A stretch of DNA of 64,000 nt, taken from assembly GCF_006345805.1 (NCBI RefSeq), contig NC_043005.1:46562001-46626000 (forward strand), in the 5' to 3' direction. This document shows, one piece after another, positions 55,254-58,328 of the stretch. Position numbers and translations under genes: made by a program. Numbering within the stretch: position 1 is the stretch's first letter; every line of letters starts with the position of its first letter. The DNA comes from Octopus sinensis (lineage: Eukaryota). The notes under the pieces were generated by a model, which ran no database searches, had not been told where the DNA came from, and saw only the letters and a list, made by a program, of their open reading frames with translations.

Positions 55254-56775
55254 GAAAAAACAAGTAAAAAAGAAAATGCTAAAATAATTTTATAGTGAAC
55301 ATTTCAGTACCGGTTTCGGTCATTTTGAGACCTTTTCAACTGTAACGATTAAATAATTAAATTTAGAAAAATTAGAAGAAAAGTTTTCTTAAAAGAATAT
55401 TTCTATAGTAGTGTTCAGATTTAAGTGGCATTCTGCCTTTCTCTGACTCCCTTGTTTGCACTTGTGTGTTCGAGGTAGTTGTGAGTTCTTGGTAGGGTAG
55501 TAGAGGGAAGGCTGGTGAGGAAAGGGGGGTAGAGAATCTGGGAGTGCCCTGATGGTCGTATTTTGAATGGTCAGTGGCGGCTGGCAGTCCAGTTCAATTC
55601 AGGAGAATATTTATATTGACAGGCTTGTTTATAGAATTAGCGTAGGTGTTATACTAAAAAACATTAGTGACAAACTTAAGGGTAGGGGGTGGAGAAGAAG
55701 AAGAAGAAGAAGAAAAGGAGAAAGAGAAGGAGAAAGAGAAGGAGAAGATGATGGTGATGGTGGTGATGATTATGACGACGATGATGATGATAACGATGAT
55801 GATGAAGAAGAAGAAGGAGGAGAAGGAGAAGATGTTGGTGATGATGGTGGCGATGATGATGACGCCGATGATGATGATAACGATGATGATGAGGAAGAAG
55901 AAGAAGAAAAAAACAGAGAAGGGAGATATGAATGGGTGTAAATATAGCTATGAAGGGGCTGATTAGTAATGGATTCTATGGAGTGTAGTATTTGTGTGTG
56001 TATATATATTTTTTTTTCTTTTATTCTAAAGTTGAGGTATATTATTTTTTGTCGTAGACCCGTTAAGAAGTGGCTTGTATTTTGTAATAAAGAGATTTTC
56101 TTTACTTATTCTTTGTCTCGAGGTTGTATCGTCCCTGAATTGGTAGAGGGGGAAAATTCTGAAGTTTGGTGTTTTTTTGTTGGCGCAAGTATCTATGTGT
56201 TGGCTAAAAGCTATTTTTCTGTTTTGGGGAATTTTTATCTGGGATCTGTGCAGGGCCATTCGTTTACGCAAACCATTTTTTGTTTGGCTATGTACTGCTC
56301 TTGACACCCGGAGCAGGTTAGTGAGTATATTAGGTTCTCCGAAGCACATGTGAAGTTGCTTTTCACTGTAAACCGTTGTCCCTGTTTGAAGGAGAACTCA
56401 GAACCCTCGATTAGATAGTCGCATATCCCGCAATTGGGTCTTCCACATTTTTTACTGTCGGCTTCTGTGTTGAAGAGTGAATTCGGGCTTGTGTAAGGAG
56501 ACTTTTCATGGATCTAGGCTGTCTTTTGCTTTTTATGATCGTGTGTGTTGGGAGGATTGTGTTCATTCTGTGGTCTTTTTTTAGGAGGGGTATGTTGTGG
56601 AGGATGGTGTCGAAGGCTTCGTTATTGAGAGGGTTGTGTGTGGGATGTATGGTAAGGCTTTTGGTTGTAAGTTTTTCTTTGATTTGGATGTCTCAGTTCC
56701 TTGATGTTAAGTTGTCAATAAGTGAAGTTGGATAGTTCCTGGTGATTAGGGTATCTTTTAGTTCTTGTAGTCGTG
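55254..56775 (-). mobile_element. Penelope-like element 3' portion (GIY-YIG + 3' UTR + pLTR): left arm of the palindrome
   Basis: ORF 56026-56349 LRKRMALHRSQIK...FSQHIDTC...RISKENLFITKYKPLLN is a GIY-YIG C-terminal half; reverse complement of 56779-58328. Confidence 0.9.
55302..55345 (-). ncRNA. Minimal type I hammerhead ribozyme with a U3-A8 compensatory core
   Basis: Sense: UUACAG UUGAAAA GGUC UCAAAAU GACC GAAA CCGG UA CUGAAA. Stem I CAG/CUG plus UU/AA; stem II GGUC/GACC; palindromic ACCGGU; GUA cleavage triplet. Confidence 0.75.
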
Positions 56776-56778
56776 ACA

Positions 56779-58328
56779 CACGACTACAAGAACTAAAAGA
56801 TACCCTAATCACCAGGAACTATCCACCTTCACTTATTGACAATGCATTCAACGTGCCCTTCAACTTAACATCAAGGAACTGAGACATCCCAAATCAAAGA
56901 AAAACTTACAACCAAAAGCCTTACCATACATCTCCACACACAACCCTCTCAATAACGAAGCCTTCGACACCATCCTCCACAACATACCCCTCCTAAAAAA
57001 GACCACAGAATGAACACAATCCTCCAAACACACACGATCATAAAAAGCAAAAGACAGCCTAGATCCATGAAAAGTCTCCTTACACAAGCCCGAATTCACT
57101 CTTCAACACAGAAGCCGACAGTAAAAAAATGTGGAAGACCCAATTGCGGGATATGCGACTATCTAATCGAGGGTTCTGAGTTCTCCTTCAAACAGGGACA
57201 ACGGTTTACAGTGAAAAGCAACTTCACGTGTGCTTCGGAGAACCTAATATACTCACTAACCTGCTCCGGGTGTCAAGAGCAGTACATAGGCCAAACAAAA
57301 AAATGGTTTGCGTAAACGAATGGCCCTGCACAGATCCCAGATAAAAATTCCCCAAAACAGAAAAATAGCTTTTAGCCAACACATAGATACTTGCGCCAAC
57401 AAAAAAACACCAAACTTCAAAATTTTCCCCCTCTACCAATTAGGGACGATACAACCTCGAGACAAAGAATAAGTAAAGAAAATCTCTTTATTACAAAATA
57501 CAAGCCACTTCTTAACGGGTCTACGACAAACAATTAATATACCTCAACTTTAGAATAAAAGAAAAAATATATATATACACACACAAATACTACACTCCAT
57601 AGAATCCATTACTAATCAGCCCCTTCATAGCTATATTTACACCATTCATATTCTCCCTTCTCTGTTTTTTTCTTCTTCTTCTTCTTCATCATCATCGTTA
57701 TCATCATCATCGCGCGTCATCATCATCGCACCACCATCATCACCACCATCTTCTCCTTCTCCTCTTCTTCTTCATCATCATCGTTATCATCATCATCGTC
57801 GTCATAATCATCACCACCATCACCATCATCTTCTCCTTCTCTTTCTCCTTCTCTTTCTCCTTCTTCTTCTTCTTCTTCTTCTTCTCCACCCCCTACCCCT
57901 TAAGTTTGTCACTAATGTTTTTTAGTATAACACCTACGCTAATTCTATAAACAAGCCTGTCAATATAAATATTCTCCTGAATGAACTGAGACTGCCAGCC
58001 GCCACTGACCATTCAAAATACGACCATCAGGGCACTCCCAGATTCTCCCACCCCCCTTTCCTCACCAGCCTTCCCTCTACTACCCTACCAAGAACTCACA
58101 ACTACCTCGAACACACAAGTGCAAACAAGGGAGTCAGAGAAAGGCAGAATGCCACTTAAATCTGAACACTACTATAGAAATATTCTTTTAAGAAAACTTT
58201 TCTTCTAATTTTTCTAAATTTAATTATTTAATCGTTACAGTGAAAAGGTCTCAAAATGACCGAAACCGGTACTGAAATGTTCACTATAAAATTATTTTAG
58301 CATTTTCTATTTTTTTACTTGTTTTTTC
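56779..58328 (+). mobile_element. Penelope-like element 3' portion: right arm of the palindrome
   Basis: TRLQELKDTLITRNYP, then KCGRPNCGICDY...FTCASENLIYSLTCSGCQEQYIGQT (Cys-rich linker plus IY...YIG nuclease motif; ORF 57010-57315). The linker suggests a Neptune-like clade (inference). Confidence 0.9.
58235..58277 (+). ncRNA. Mirror copy of the hammerhead, missing one U in the core
   Basis: UUACAG -UGAAAA GGUC UCAAAAU GACC GAAA CCGG UA CUGAAA. Confidence 0.55.

Follow-up and report, generated by a model that had tools for sequence, protein, structure and literature searches.

The locus described here lies in a 64,000-nucleotide stretch of the Octopus sinensis genome (assembly GCF_006345805.1, contig NC_043005.1, positions 46,562,001 to 46,626,000 of the forward strand; hereafter the window, to which all positions refer) and consists of a 3-kb palindrome formed by two head-to-head copies of the 3' part of a Penelope-like element (PLE). 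The presence of the palindrome in this sequence was confirmed: its arms, 55254-56775 and 56779-58328, are an inverted repeat around a 3-nt spacer, ACA, just as an initial annotation, made by reading the DNA alone, had described. An inverted-repeat scan tiled 55243-56581 with 56995-58336 in collinear inverted blocks of 92-100 % complementarity, and global alignment of the left arm with the reverse complement of the right arm gave 1503 matches, 9 mismatches and 22 indel events, 18 of them of a single nucleotide and the remainder of 2, 3, 4 and 21 nt. At the centre, gtcgtg (56770-75) is followed by aca (56776-78) and cacgac (56779-84). Folded as RNA, the central 1 kb forms a single hairpin of -908.7 kcal/mol, against -262 ± 9.5 kcal/mol in shuffled sequences, which rules out a chance origin of the palindrome. 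High-scoring 'miRNA precursor' matches obtained at the centre with Rfam in E-value mode merely reflect this hairpin and were dismissed. The mirror has its limits at G55254 and C58328, each adjoining a TA run, and the earlier observation that it stops at the 3' end of the element, at TA dinucleotides, was therefore accurate.

The assignment of the arms to a Penelope-like element is well founded. Three-frame translations of both arms gave pieces of one protein, which are, in order, ...TRLQELKDTLITRNYP..., KKCGRPNCGIC, NLIYSLTCSGCQEQYIGQT, LRKRMALHR, SQHIDTC and KENLFITKYKPLLN. The stitched C-terminal translation matches 12 proteins (E-values 2e-85 to 8e-25, 50-67 % identity), those with a named source being from the cephalopods Argonauta hians and Octopus vulgaris and the others from ENA/Logan contigs. 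These proteins carry the domains HTH_animal (PF26215) and GIY-YIG (PF01541), and the Pfam GIY-YIG model matched the stitched translation itself with an E-value of 1.5e-4, at 22.5 bits against a cut-off of 22.6. On alignment with 8 homologues, the nuclease residues I157, Y158, C162, C165, Y169, G171, R178/R180, H184, H201, E234 and N246 were found to be invariant, and the cysteines C118, C123 and C126 of a linker finger, C-GRPN-C-GI-C (CX4CxxC), are conserved in all 9 aligned sequences. A pair of cysteines between GIY and YIG, belonging to the CCHH motif, marks PLE nucleases, while a CX2-5CxxC linker finger, which Penelope/Poseidon lack, is found in Neptune and Nematis and goes together with insertion into (TA)n (PMC8557442). 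The CCHH GIY-YIG nuclease is a feature of the conceptual translation only, both arms being frameshifted. Judging from these conserved residues, the element is Penelope-like in the broad sense and of the linker-finger type, and we assign it to no clade; by protein similarity, the elements nearest to it are those of cephalopods.

The two arms share their starting nucleotide, which lies in the region that follows the reverse transcriptase (RT) core (...T-R-LQELKDTLITRNYP...), in agreement with the initial annotation. The homologues P0006 and P0007 extend upstream into the RT with its (R)YLDD motif, and the position read from them places the start of the arms approximately 130 residues downstream of the RT YxDD motif; a related Logan contig (L002, 76 % DNA identity) runs 519 nt upstream of the turning point. 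Since these relatives continue upstream, the two arms are 5'-truncated at one and the same nucleotide. The stop codon is followed by about 120 nt, a GAA/GAT-rich repeat of 2 x 87 nt recognised by Tandem Repeats Finder (TRF) and about 440 nt of terminal sequence, so that the GIY-YIG remnant and the (GAT/GAA)n 3' untranslated region (UTR) are indeed present in both arms, as had been noted. Within the 64-kb window no direct repeat of the 3' region of the arms was found, nor was there a full-length or other copy of the element. A 235-aa open reading frame (ORF) with a reverse-transcriptase domain (RVT_1, E-value 4.9e-11; ...LRYVDDTFILW...) is located at 39919-40626 on the minus strand; it is a separate retroelement fragment without DNA similarity to the palindrome arms.

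A frame map drawn against the homologues P0001, P0004 and P0009 revealed that the right arm is shifted in frame about four times (near 56846, 57000, 57303 and 57441) and that the left arm carries about five lesions, namely a deletion of 21/22 nt at 56712 and the loss of single nucleotides near 56686, 56644, 56448 and 56288. Every lesion is private to one arm, save the shift near 56846, where the corresponding segment of the left arm is deleted and sharing is possible, and no stop codon is common to the two arms. As the frameshifts are arm-specific and the stops unshared, the common ancestor of the arms had an open frame, which is as expected if it was copied from the RNA of an active element. 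With both arms frameshifted, the element itself is, to judge by its coding sequence, now dead.

On the left the palindrome is preceded by (TATC)n and (CT)n repeats, which constitute the tail of a dispersed repeat of about 320 nt that resembles a short interspersed element (SINE). Its copies in the window (positions 9563, 10276, 18618, 38050, 43847, 50889 on the minus strand, 52000 and 54993) are 75-90 % identical and mostly end in microsatellite tails; the diagnostic 23-mer TTGGGCAAGTGTCTTCTACTATA is found at 8 places in the window where 0 would be expected, and ARAGORN found no tRNA-like head in the repeat. The SINE previously placed on the left flank can thus be retained as a SINE-like dispersed repeat. 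TA, CA and CT microsatellites are unusually abundant across the whole window, and an imperfect, self-complementary (AT)n array of 420 nt is located at 53864-54283.

The right border is different in its make-up. Within the window, the sequence to the right of 58340 shows no resemblance to the arms and comprises a 38-nt extension that is found at this end only, (TA)n and unique DNA; the initial annotation, which omitted the extension, had seen another pseudo-long terminal repeat (pLTR) here, and this is contradicted by the dissimilarity to the arms. What had been taken for a pLTR may be a unique segment of 148 nt (58408-58555) between the (TA)n arrays 58367-58407 and 58556-58639, which contains no repeat of the window and no Rfam match. 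No further copy of the 38-nt extension is present elsewhere in the window, and the right flank (58408-64000) does not mirror the left one. The (TA)n target proposed earlier is upheld, as TRF identified (TA)n on both sides of the insertion. The features of the locus are listed in Table 1.

Table 1. Features of the palindromic PLE locus and its borders, in window coordinates
Feature	Position	Strand	Basis and remarks
Left (TA)18.5 run, left half of the presumed (TA)n target, after (TATC)n and (CT)n	55217-55253		TRF; sequence
Left arm, 3' 1.52 kb of the Penelope-like element	55254-56775	-	3' end 55254, 5' truncation 56775; arm alignment and tblastn to cephalopod PLE proteins
Hammerhead-like motif, left arm, CAG-UUGAAAA-GGUC..GACC-GAAAC-CGGU-A/CUG (the slash is the bar between A and CUG)	55289-55353	-	HH9 19.7 bits, E = 0.015 in 251 nt, 0.3 in 5 kb
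GAA/GAT-rich trinucleotide region (2 x 87 nt), left-arm 3' UTR	55693-55905		TRF
Left-arm coding remnant (HTH/linker, CX4CxxC finger, GIY-YIG)	56026-56775	-	Frame map against P0001, P0004, P0009; translations
Loop ACA	56776-56778	+	With G56775, element coding sequence (GAC ACA CGA = D-T-R) continuing into the right arm; alignment to L002, L001
Right arm, 3' 1.55 kb of the same element	56779-58328	+	3' end 58328; arm alignment and tblastn
Right-arm coding remnant, stop at 57535-57537	56779-57537	+	Frame map; translations; Pfam GIY-YIG on stitched translation
Linker Zn-finger-like motif C-GRPN-C-GI-C (CX4CxxC)	57130-57156	+	Alignment with 8 homologues
GIY...YIG core LIYSLTCSGCQEQYIGQT, two CCHH cysteines between the halves	57244-57297	+	Alignment with 8 homologues
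Mirror copy of the trinucleotide-rich 3' UTR repeat, right arm	57677-57885		TRF
Hammerhead-like motif, right arm, 1-nt deletion in core box (UGAAAA)	58227-58290	+	HH9 14 bits, E = 1 in 271 nt
One-sided 38-nt extension ATATATATCAACTCGTGTGTTCCTTTTCACCCTTATAC, candidate PLE 'tail', absent at the left end	58329-58366	+	30-nt gap in arm alignment; unique in window; same layout in L003
Right (TA)n run, right half of the presumed target	58367-58407		TRF

The initial description of the arms as hammerhead-bearing is weakly supported, as the motif concerned is a low-scoring, sub-threshold variant. At gathering thresholds zero Rfam families pass in the whole window; in E-value mode, HH9 matches were obtained on the sense strand 40-100 nt from each element end, the left-arm match reaching 19.7 bits and the right-arm match 14 bits where the gathering score is 52. 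Minimal, dimer-dependent hammerheads with a short palindromic helix III have been described from PLEs (PMC4209133). The motif resembles them in its position near the element 3' end on the sense strand, its 4-bp helix II, its GAAAC box and its helix III, which in the left arm is the loopless palindrome ACCGGU; it differs, however, in the non-canonical core box, which reads UUGAAAA (left) or UGAAAA (right) and not CUGAUGA, and in a score far below the Rfam threshold. Two residues of the catalytic box, C3 and G8, are both altered, to U and A. In active hammerheads these two residues pair with each other, and the double change could be a covariant variant or plain decay. By Rfam, no hammerhead was found in the O. 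vulgaris relative of the element (L001) or in the pLTR of an Argonauta relative (L004), and a metagenome scan with a 22-mer of the hammerhead region returned 0 matches. From its sequence, ribozyme activity of the motif is doubtful.

The anatomy of the locus fits what has been published for PLEs. Insertions of these elements are highly 5'-truncated, biased towards microsatellites and of a structure that troubles assemblies, and a 'tail' of 30-40 bp is often found at only one of their ends (PMC8557442). Inverted-repeat structures are abundant, with palindromes at the inverted junction that were read as evidence of self-priming, and the head-to-head arrangement is the most frequent (PMC3846280). 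A purified PLE protein was found to cleave and extend both target strands, and reverse transcription starts at two adjacent internal sites, the tail being the stretch between them (PMC11167929). The statement of the initial annotation that inverted PLE pieces are usually short pLTR ones thus understates the literature, in which inverted 5'-truncated copies, head-to-head orientation and palindromic junctions are hallmarks (PMC8557442, PMC3846280). With the published head-to-head insertions of endonuclease-positive (EN+) PLEs (Arkhipova et al. 2013, PMC3846280; Craig et al. 2021, PMC8557442) the window locus shares an inverted 5'-truncated copy, a palindromic junction, a one-ended stretch of the length of the published tails (30-40 nt), here a candidate tail, a (TA)n target without recognisable target-site duplication and a GIY-YIG/CCHH nuclease. 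In the published type, however, the inverted piece is shorter than the direct one, which is often a full-length copy with pLTRs, whereas the window locus lacks both a longer copy and a direct repeat and consists of two equal arms of 1.5 kb around a 3-nt loop.

Long inverted arms were also present in one of the three long cephalopod loci examined. In this Argonauta hians locus (L003; GCA_054771915.1, BAAFZT010000013.1, 6063-12601), which encodes a related protein (~50 % identity), inverted arms of 2.2 kb (6091-8296 and 12601-10451) are 96.7 % identical and join head-to-head onto a sense copy that runs 2.1 kb further 5'. It resembles the window locus in having (TA)n at both outer ends, inverted arms on the kilobase scale and a one-ended extension, in this case of 39 nt, between (TA)n and the element end at the left end only; its arms are nevertheless unequal, its junction is not a fold-back and only one 1-nt indel separates its arms, as against 18 in the window. 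Testing for an internal origin of tails, we found no match of the 39-nt extension inside the sense copy of the same locus. A second locus of A. hians (L004; BAAFZT010000027.1, 7248-13133) has direct pLTRs of 303 nt that are identical at 302 of 303 positions (99.7 %), likewise lies in (TA)n on both sides, and carries no tail. The two independent cases agree in having, at a single end, a short stretch of TA followed by about 30 nt of unique DNA and a long (TA)n, and on this comparison the 38-nt extension of the window is more likely to be a PLE tail than ordinary flank.

The centre of the palindrome is informative about its origin. In related copies the sequence at the turning point is GACACACGAC (Logan contig) or ACACACG (O. 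vulgaris), and G56775, ACA and CACGAC together constitute the natural element sequence of both (D-T-R, then LQELK), which the reverse reading, TGT, does not. From this match, one strand follows the element sequence without interruption through the turn, and the fold-back copy sets in with the left arm. The homology available before the turn amounts to at most 1 bp (G56775/C56779) with a 3-nt loop, and an odd loop of this kind, with at most 1 nt of homology, is characteristic of an intrastrand fold-back, which supports a snap-back of the nascent strand. On the strength of the sequence features described, we consider it likely that the locus stems from a single retrotransposition of a PLE into a (TA)n microsatellite, in the course of which the cDNA folded back and copied itself; the fold-back copying already proposed in the initial annotation is, accordingly, the best reading of the centre. 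The insertion is fully symmetric and probably young, and it is a clean example of a known phenomenon and not a new one.

In such a scenario the RT would have been primed at the right-hand nick and would have begun copying in the 3' region of the RNA, the 38-nt tail included, to run about 1.55 kb, into the HTH/linker coding region. The growing cDNA would then have turned back on itself at its 3' end, leaving a loop of 3 nt and pairing over no more than 1 nt, and the enzyme would have copied the cDNA back to the element 3' end, where the returning strand may have been joined to the other side of the (TA)n, plausibly via ATATATAT at the start of the tail. Host synthesis would finally have made the fold-back strand double-stranded, the expected outcome being head-to-head arms truncated at one shared nucleotide. 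The palindrome, the identity of the element, the (TA)n flanks, the one-sided extension, the collinear loop and the open frame of the ancestor can be read from the sequence; from their arrangement we infer the snap-back itself, the side primed first and the mode of joining. A comparable case at first sight is human L1 twin priming, reportedly described by Ostertag and Kazazian in 2001, in which inverted segments of one element are said to lie at a single insertion site; there, however, different parts of the element are inverted and no part is duplicated, so that no palindrome results, and the RT and endonuclease are of another class.

Several points weigh against the snap-back interpretation. 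A plain snap-back should mirror the tail too, and its absence on the left would have to be attributed to joining through microhomology at ATATATAT or to resolution by a nuclease. The 38 nt could, alternatively, be ordinary flank between two TA runs, for which the window offers no other copy for comparison. The asymmetric Argonauta locus cannot be a simple snap-back, and PLEs must therefore be able to form inverted structures in at least one further way. Between the arms there are 18 one-nucleotide indels against 9 substitutions, a ratio about 59 times that in other repeat pairs of the window, which shows that the base-level sequence at the arms is unusual or unreliable. Finally, the palindrome is known here from one assembled sequence. 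Exact look-ups in public assemblies found the longest ORFs of the arms not on record.

The one-sided extension also bears on a possible priming of both target strands. In that event both strands would have been nicked and extended by the PLE protein, giving two cDNAs that run to the 5' end of the same 5'-truncated RNA and are subsequently joined. One arm with a tail and one without would be directly explained, more naturally than by snap-back, and the asymmetric Argonauta locus fits two independent cDNAs; such a mechanism must operate in cases of its kind. At the window locus, however, the run-off 3' ends of the two cDNAs would be identical and non-complementary, and an even, loop-free centre or random filler would be expected; the 3-nt loop that is observed instead matches the natural sequence on one strand only, for which the chance is about 1 in 64, and identical truncations would require an RNA ending exactly there. 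As an even centre or filler was expected and a 3-nt loop was observed, two-strand priming is ranked below snap-back, and we give it a low probability for this locus.

The loss of the tail would also follow from a rearrangement after insertion, in which a break or stalled fork at 56775 in a single PLE copy led to a fold-back inversion by a process of the type of microhomology-mediated break-induced replication (MMBIR), with a second template switch at the TA run. A second switch at ATATATAT would lose the tail, the centre needs only minimal homology and the TA repeats offer microhomology at the outer joint; nevertheless two precisely placed template switches are needed, one of them exactly on the element boundary. 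Fold-back inversions, moreover, usually reach into the flanks and leave larger spacers. This route also makes no use of the known tendency of PLEs to build such a structure at insertion, and it appears to us the least credible of the origins considered, with hardly any probability attached to it.

The composition of the differences between the arms bears on a further possibility, that of an assembly artefact. The initial annotation had described scattered indels and substitutions; differences do exist, but the strong excess of one-nucleotide indels was overlooked. For comparison, window repeat pairs of at least 85 % identity contain 9 one-nucleotide gaps and 266 mismatches in 2536 aligned nt; the one-nucleotide indel rate there is at most 0.35 % per aligned position as against 1.2 % in the arms, and only 4 of the 18 one-nucleotide indels lie in homopolymers of at least 7 nt. 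The inverted arms of the Argonauta locus differ by 8 substitutions, 5 microsatellite-unit indels and one 1-nt indel. Errors of the RT during snap-back were rejected as the source of the excess, given that derived frameshifts are found in both arms and first-strand errors would be common to both; an assembly-wide indel error was rejected likewise, the other repeat pairs in the window limiting its rate far below what the arms need. Short-read polishing leaves out multi-mapping reads, and the excess probably stems from errors in the local consensus that the inverted repeat brought about. Real inverted duplicates also lower the quality of nanopore base calls (PMC7229812).

Such a poor consensus could also point to a fold-back or chimeric long read that broke inside one young PLE copy and from which the assembly continued into a second, nearly identical copy in a different (TA)n array, fusing two loci through a false palindrome. 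In that case the arms would come from separate insertions, which would account for the one-ended tail, the 21-nt deletion and the unequal length of the TA runs. Long-read sequencing and amplification are known to produce palindromic chimeras. PLE structures are often the cause of assembly problems (PMC8557442). On the other hand, the indel excess is just as much expected for a real inverted repeat, by reason of the same polishing and base-calling effects (PMC7229812), and it gives no means of telling a real palindrome from a pair of young copies that a chimeric read has joined. The simplest form of artefact, a fold-back with the right flank mirroring the left, was rejected, the flanks not being mirror images. 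The caution kept in the initial annotation about a read fold-back was proper, and so was its remark that such an artefact would be unlikely to end at the element boundary: with the mirror ending at the element end and unique sequence in both flanks, a second, coincidental join is needed. Fold-back artefacts typically occur at contig ends, whereas this palindrome is internal, with 55 kb of sequence to its left and 5.6 kb to its right. Genuine head-to-head PLE copies are, in addition, common. An artefact is, all in all, unlikely, even if it deserves more weight than the other alternatives.

For specialists in PLEs a structure of this kind is nothing unexpected. The formation of tandem and inverted PLE structures is nevertheless still unsettled, and a symmetric fold-back with a collinear loop and a one-sided tail would represent a clean natural product that can be set against the two-strand priming and the two RT start sites observed in vitro. 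A genome-wide census of symmetric copies could distinguish snap-back from two-strand priming. On the practical side, PLE palindromes lower the local consensus quality and invite misassembly.

If transcribed across, the locus would yield an RNA hairpin of about 1.5 kb. Loci of the hairpin-RNA (hpRNA) type, built of inverted repeats, feed endo-siRNA pathways or serve as ADAR substrates; the window locus would share with them a potential long, near-perfect intramolecular RNA duplex, and differs from them in being known as sequence alone. A role in double-stranded RNA (dsRNA) formation, ADAR editing or small-RNA production would be a physical possibility only. A bolder proposal, to which we attach a very low probability, is that a young and real palindromic PLE insertion is transcribed and acts as an hpRNA gene, its ~1.5-kb duplex giving rise to small RNAs against this PLE family or undergoing heavy ADAR editing. 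Were this true, the genome would also document directly that the reverse transcriptase of a PLE can use a hairpin of its own cDNA as primer and go on to copy a DNA template over 1.5 kb. If transcribed, the locus would be a candidate for producing long dsRNA in a group of animals known to edit their RNA extensively.

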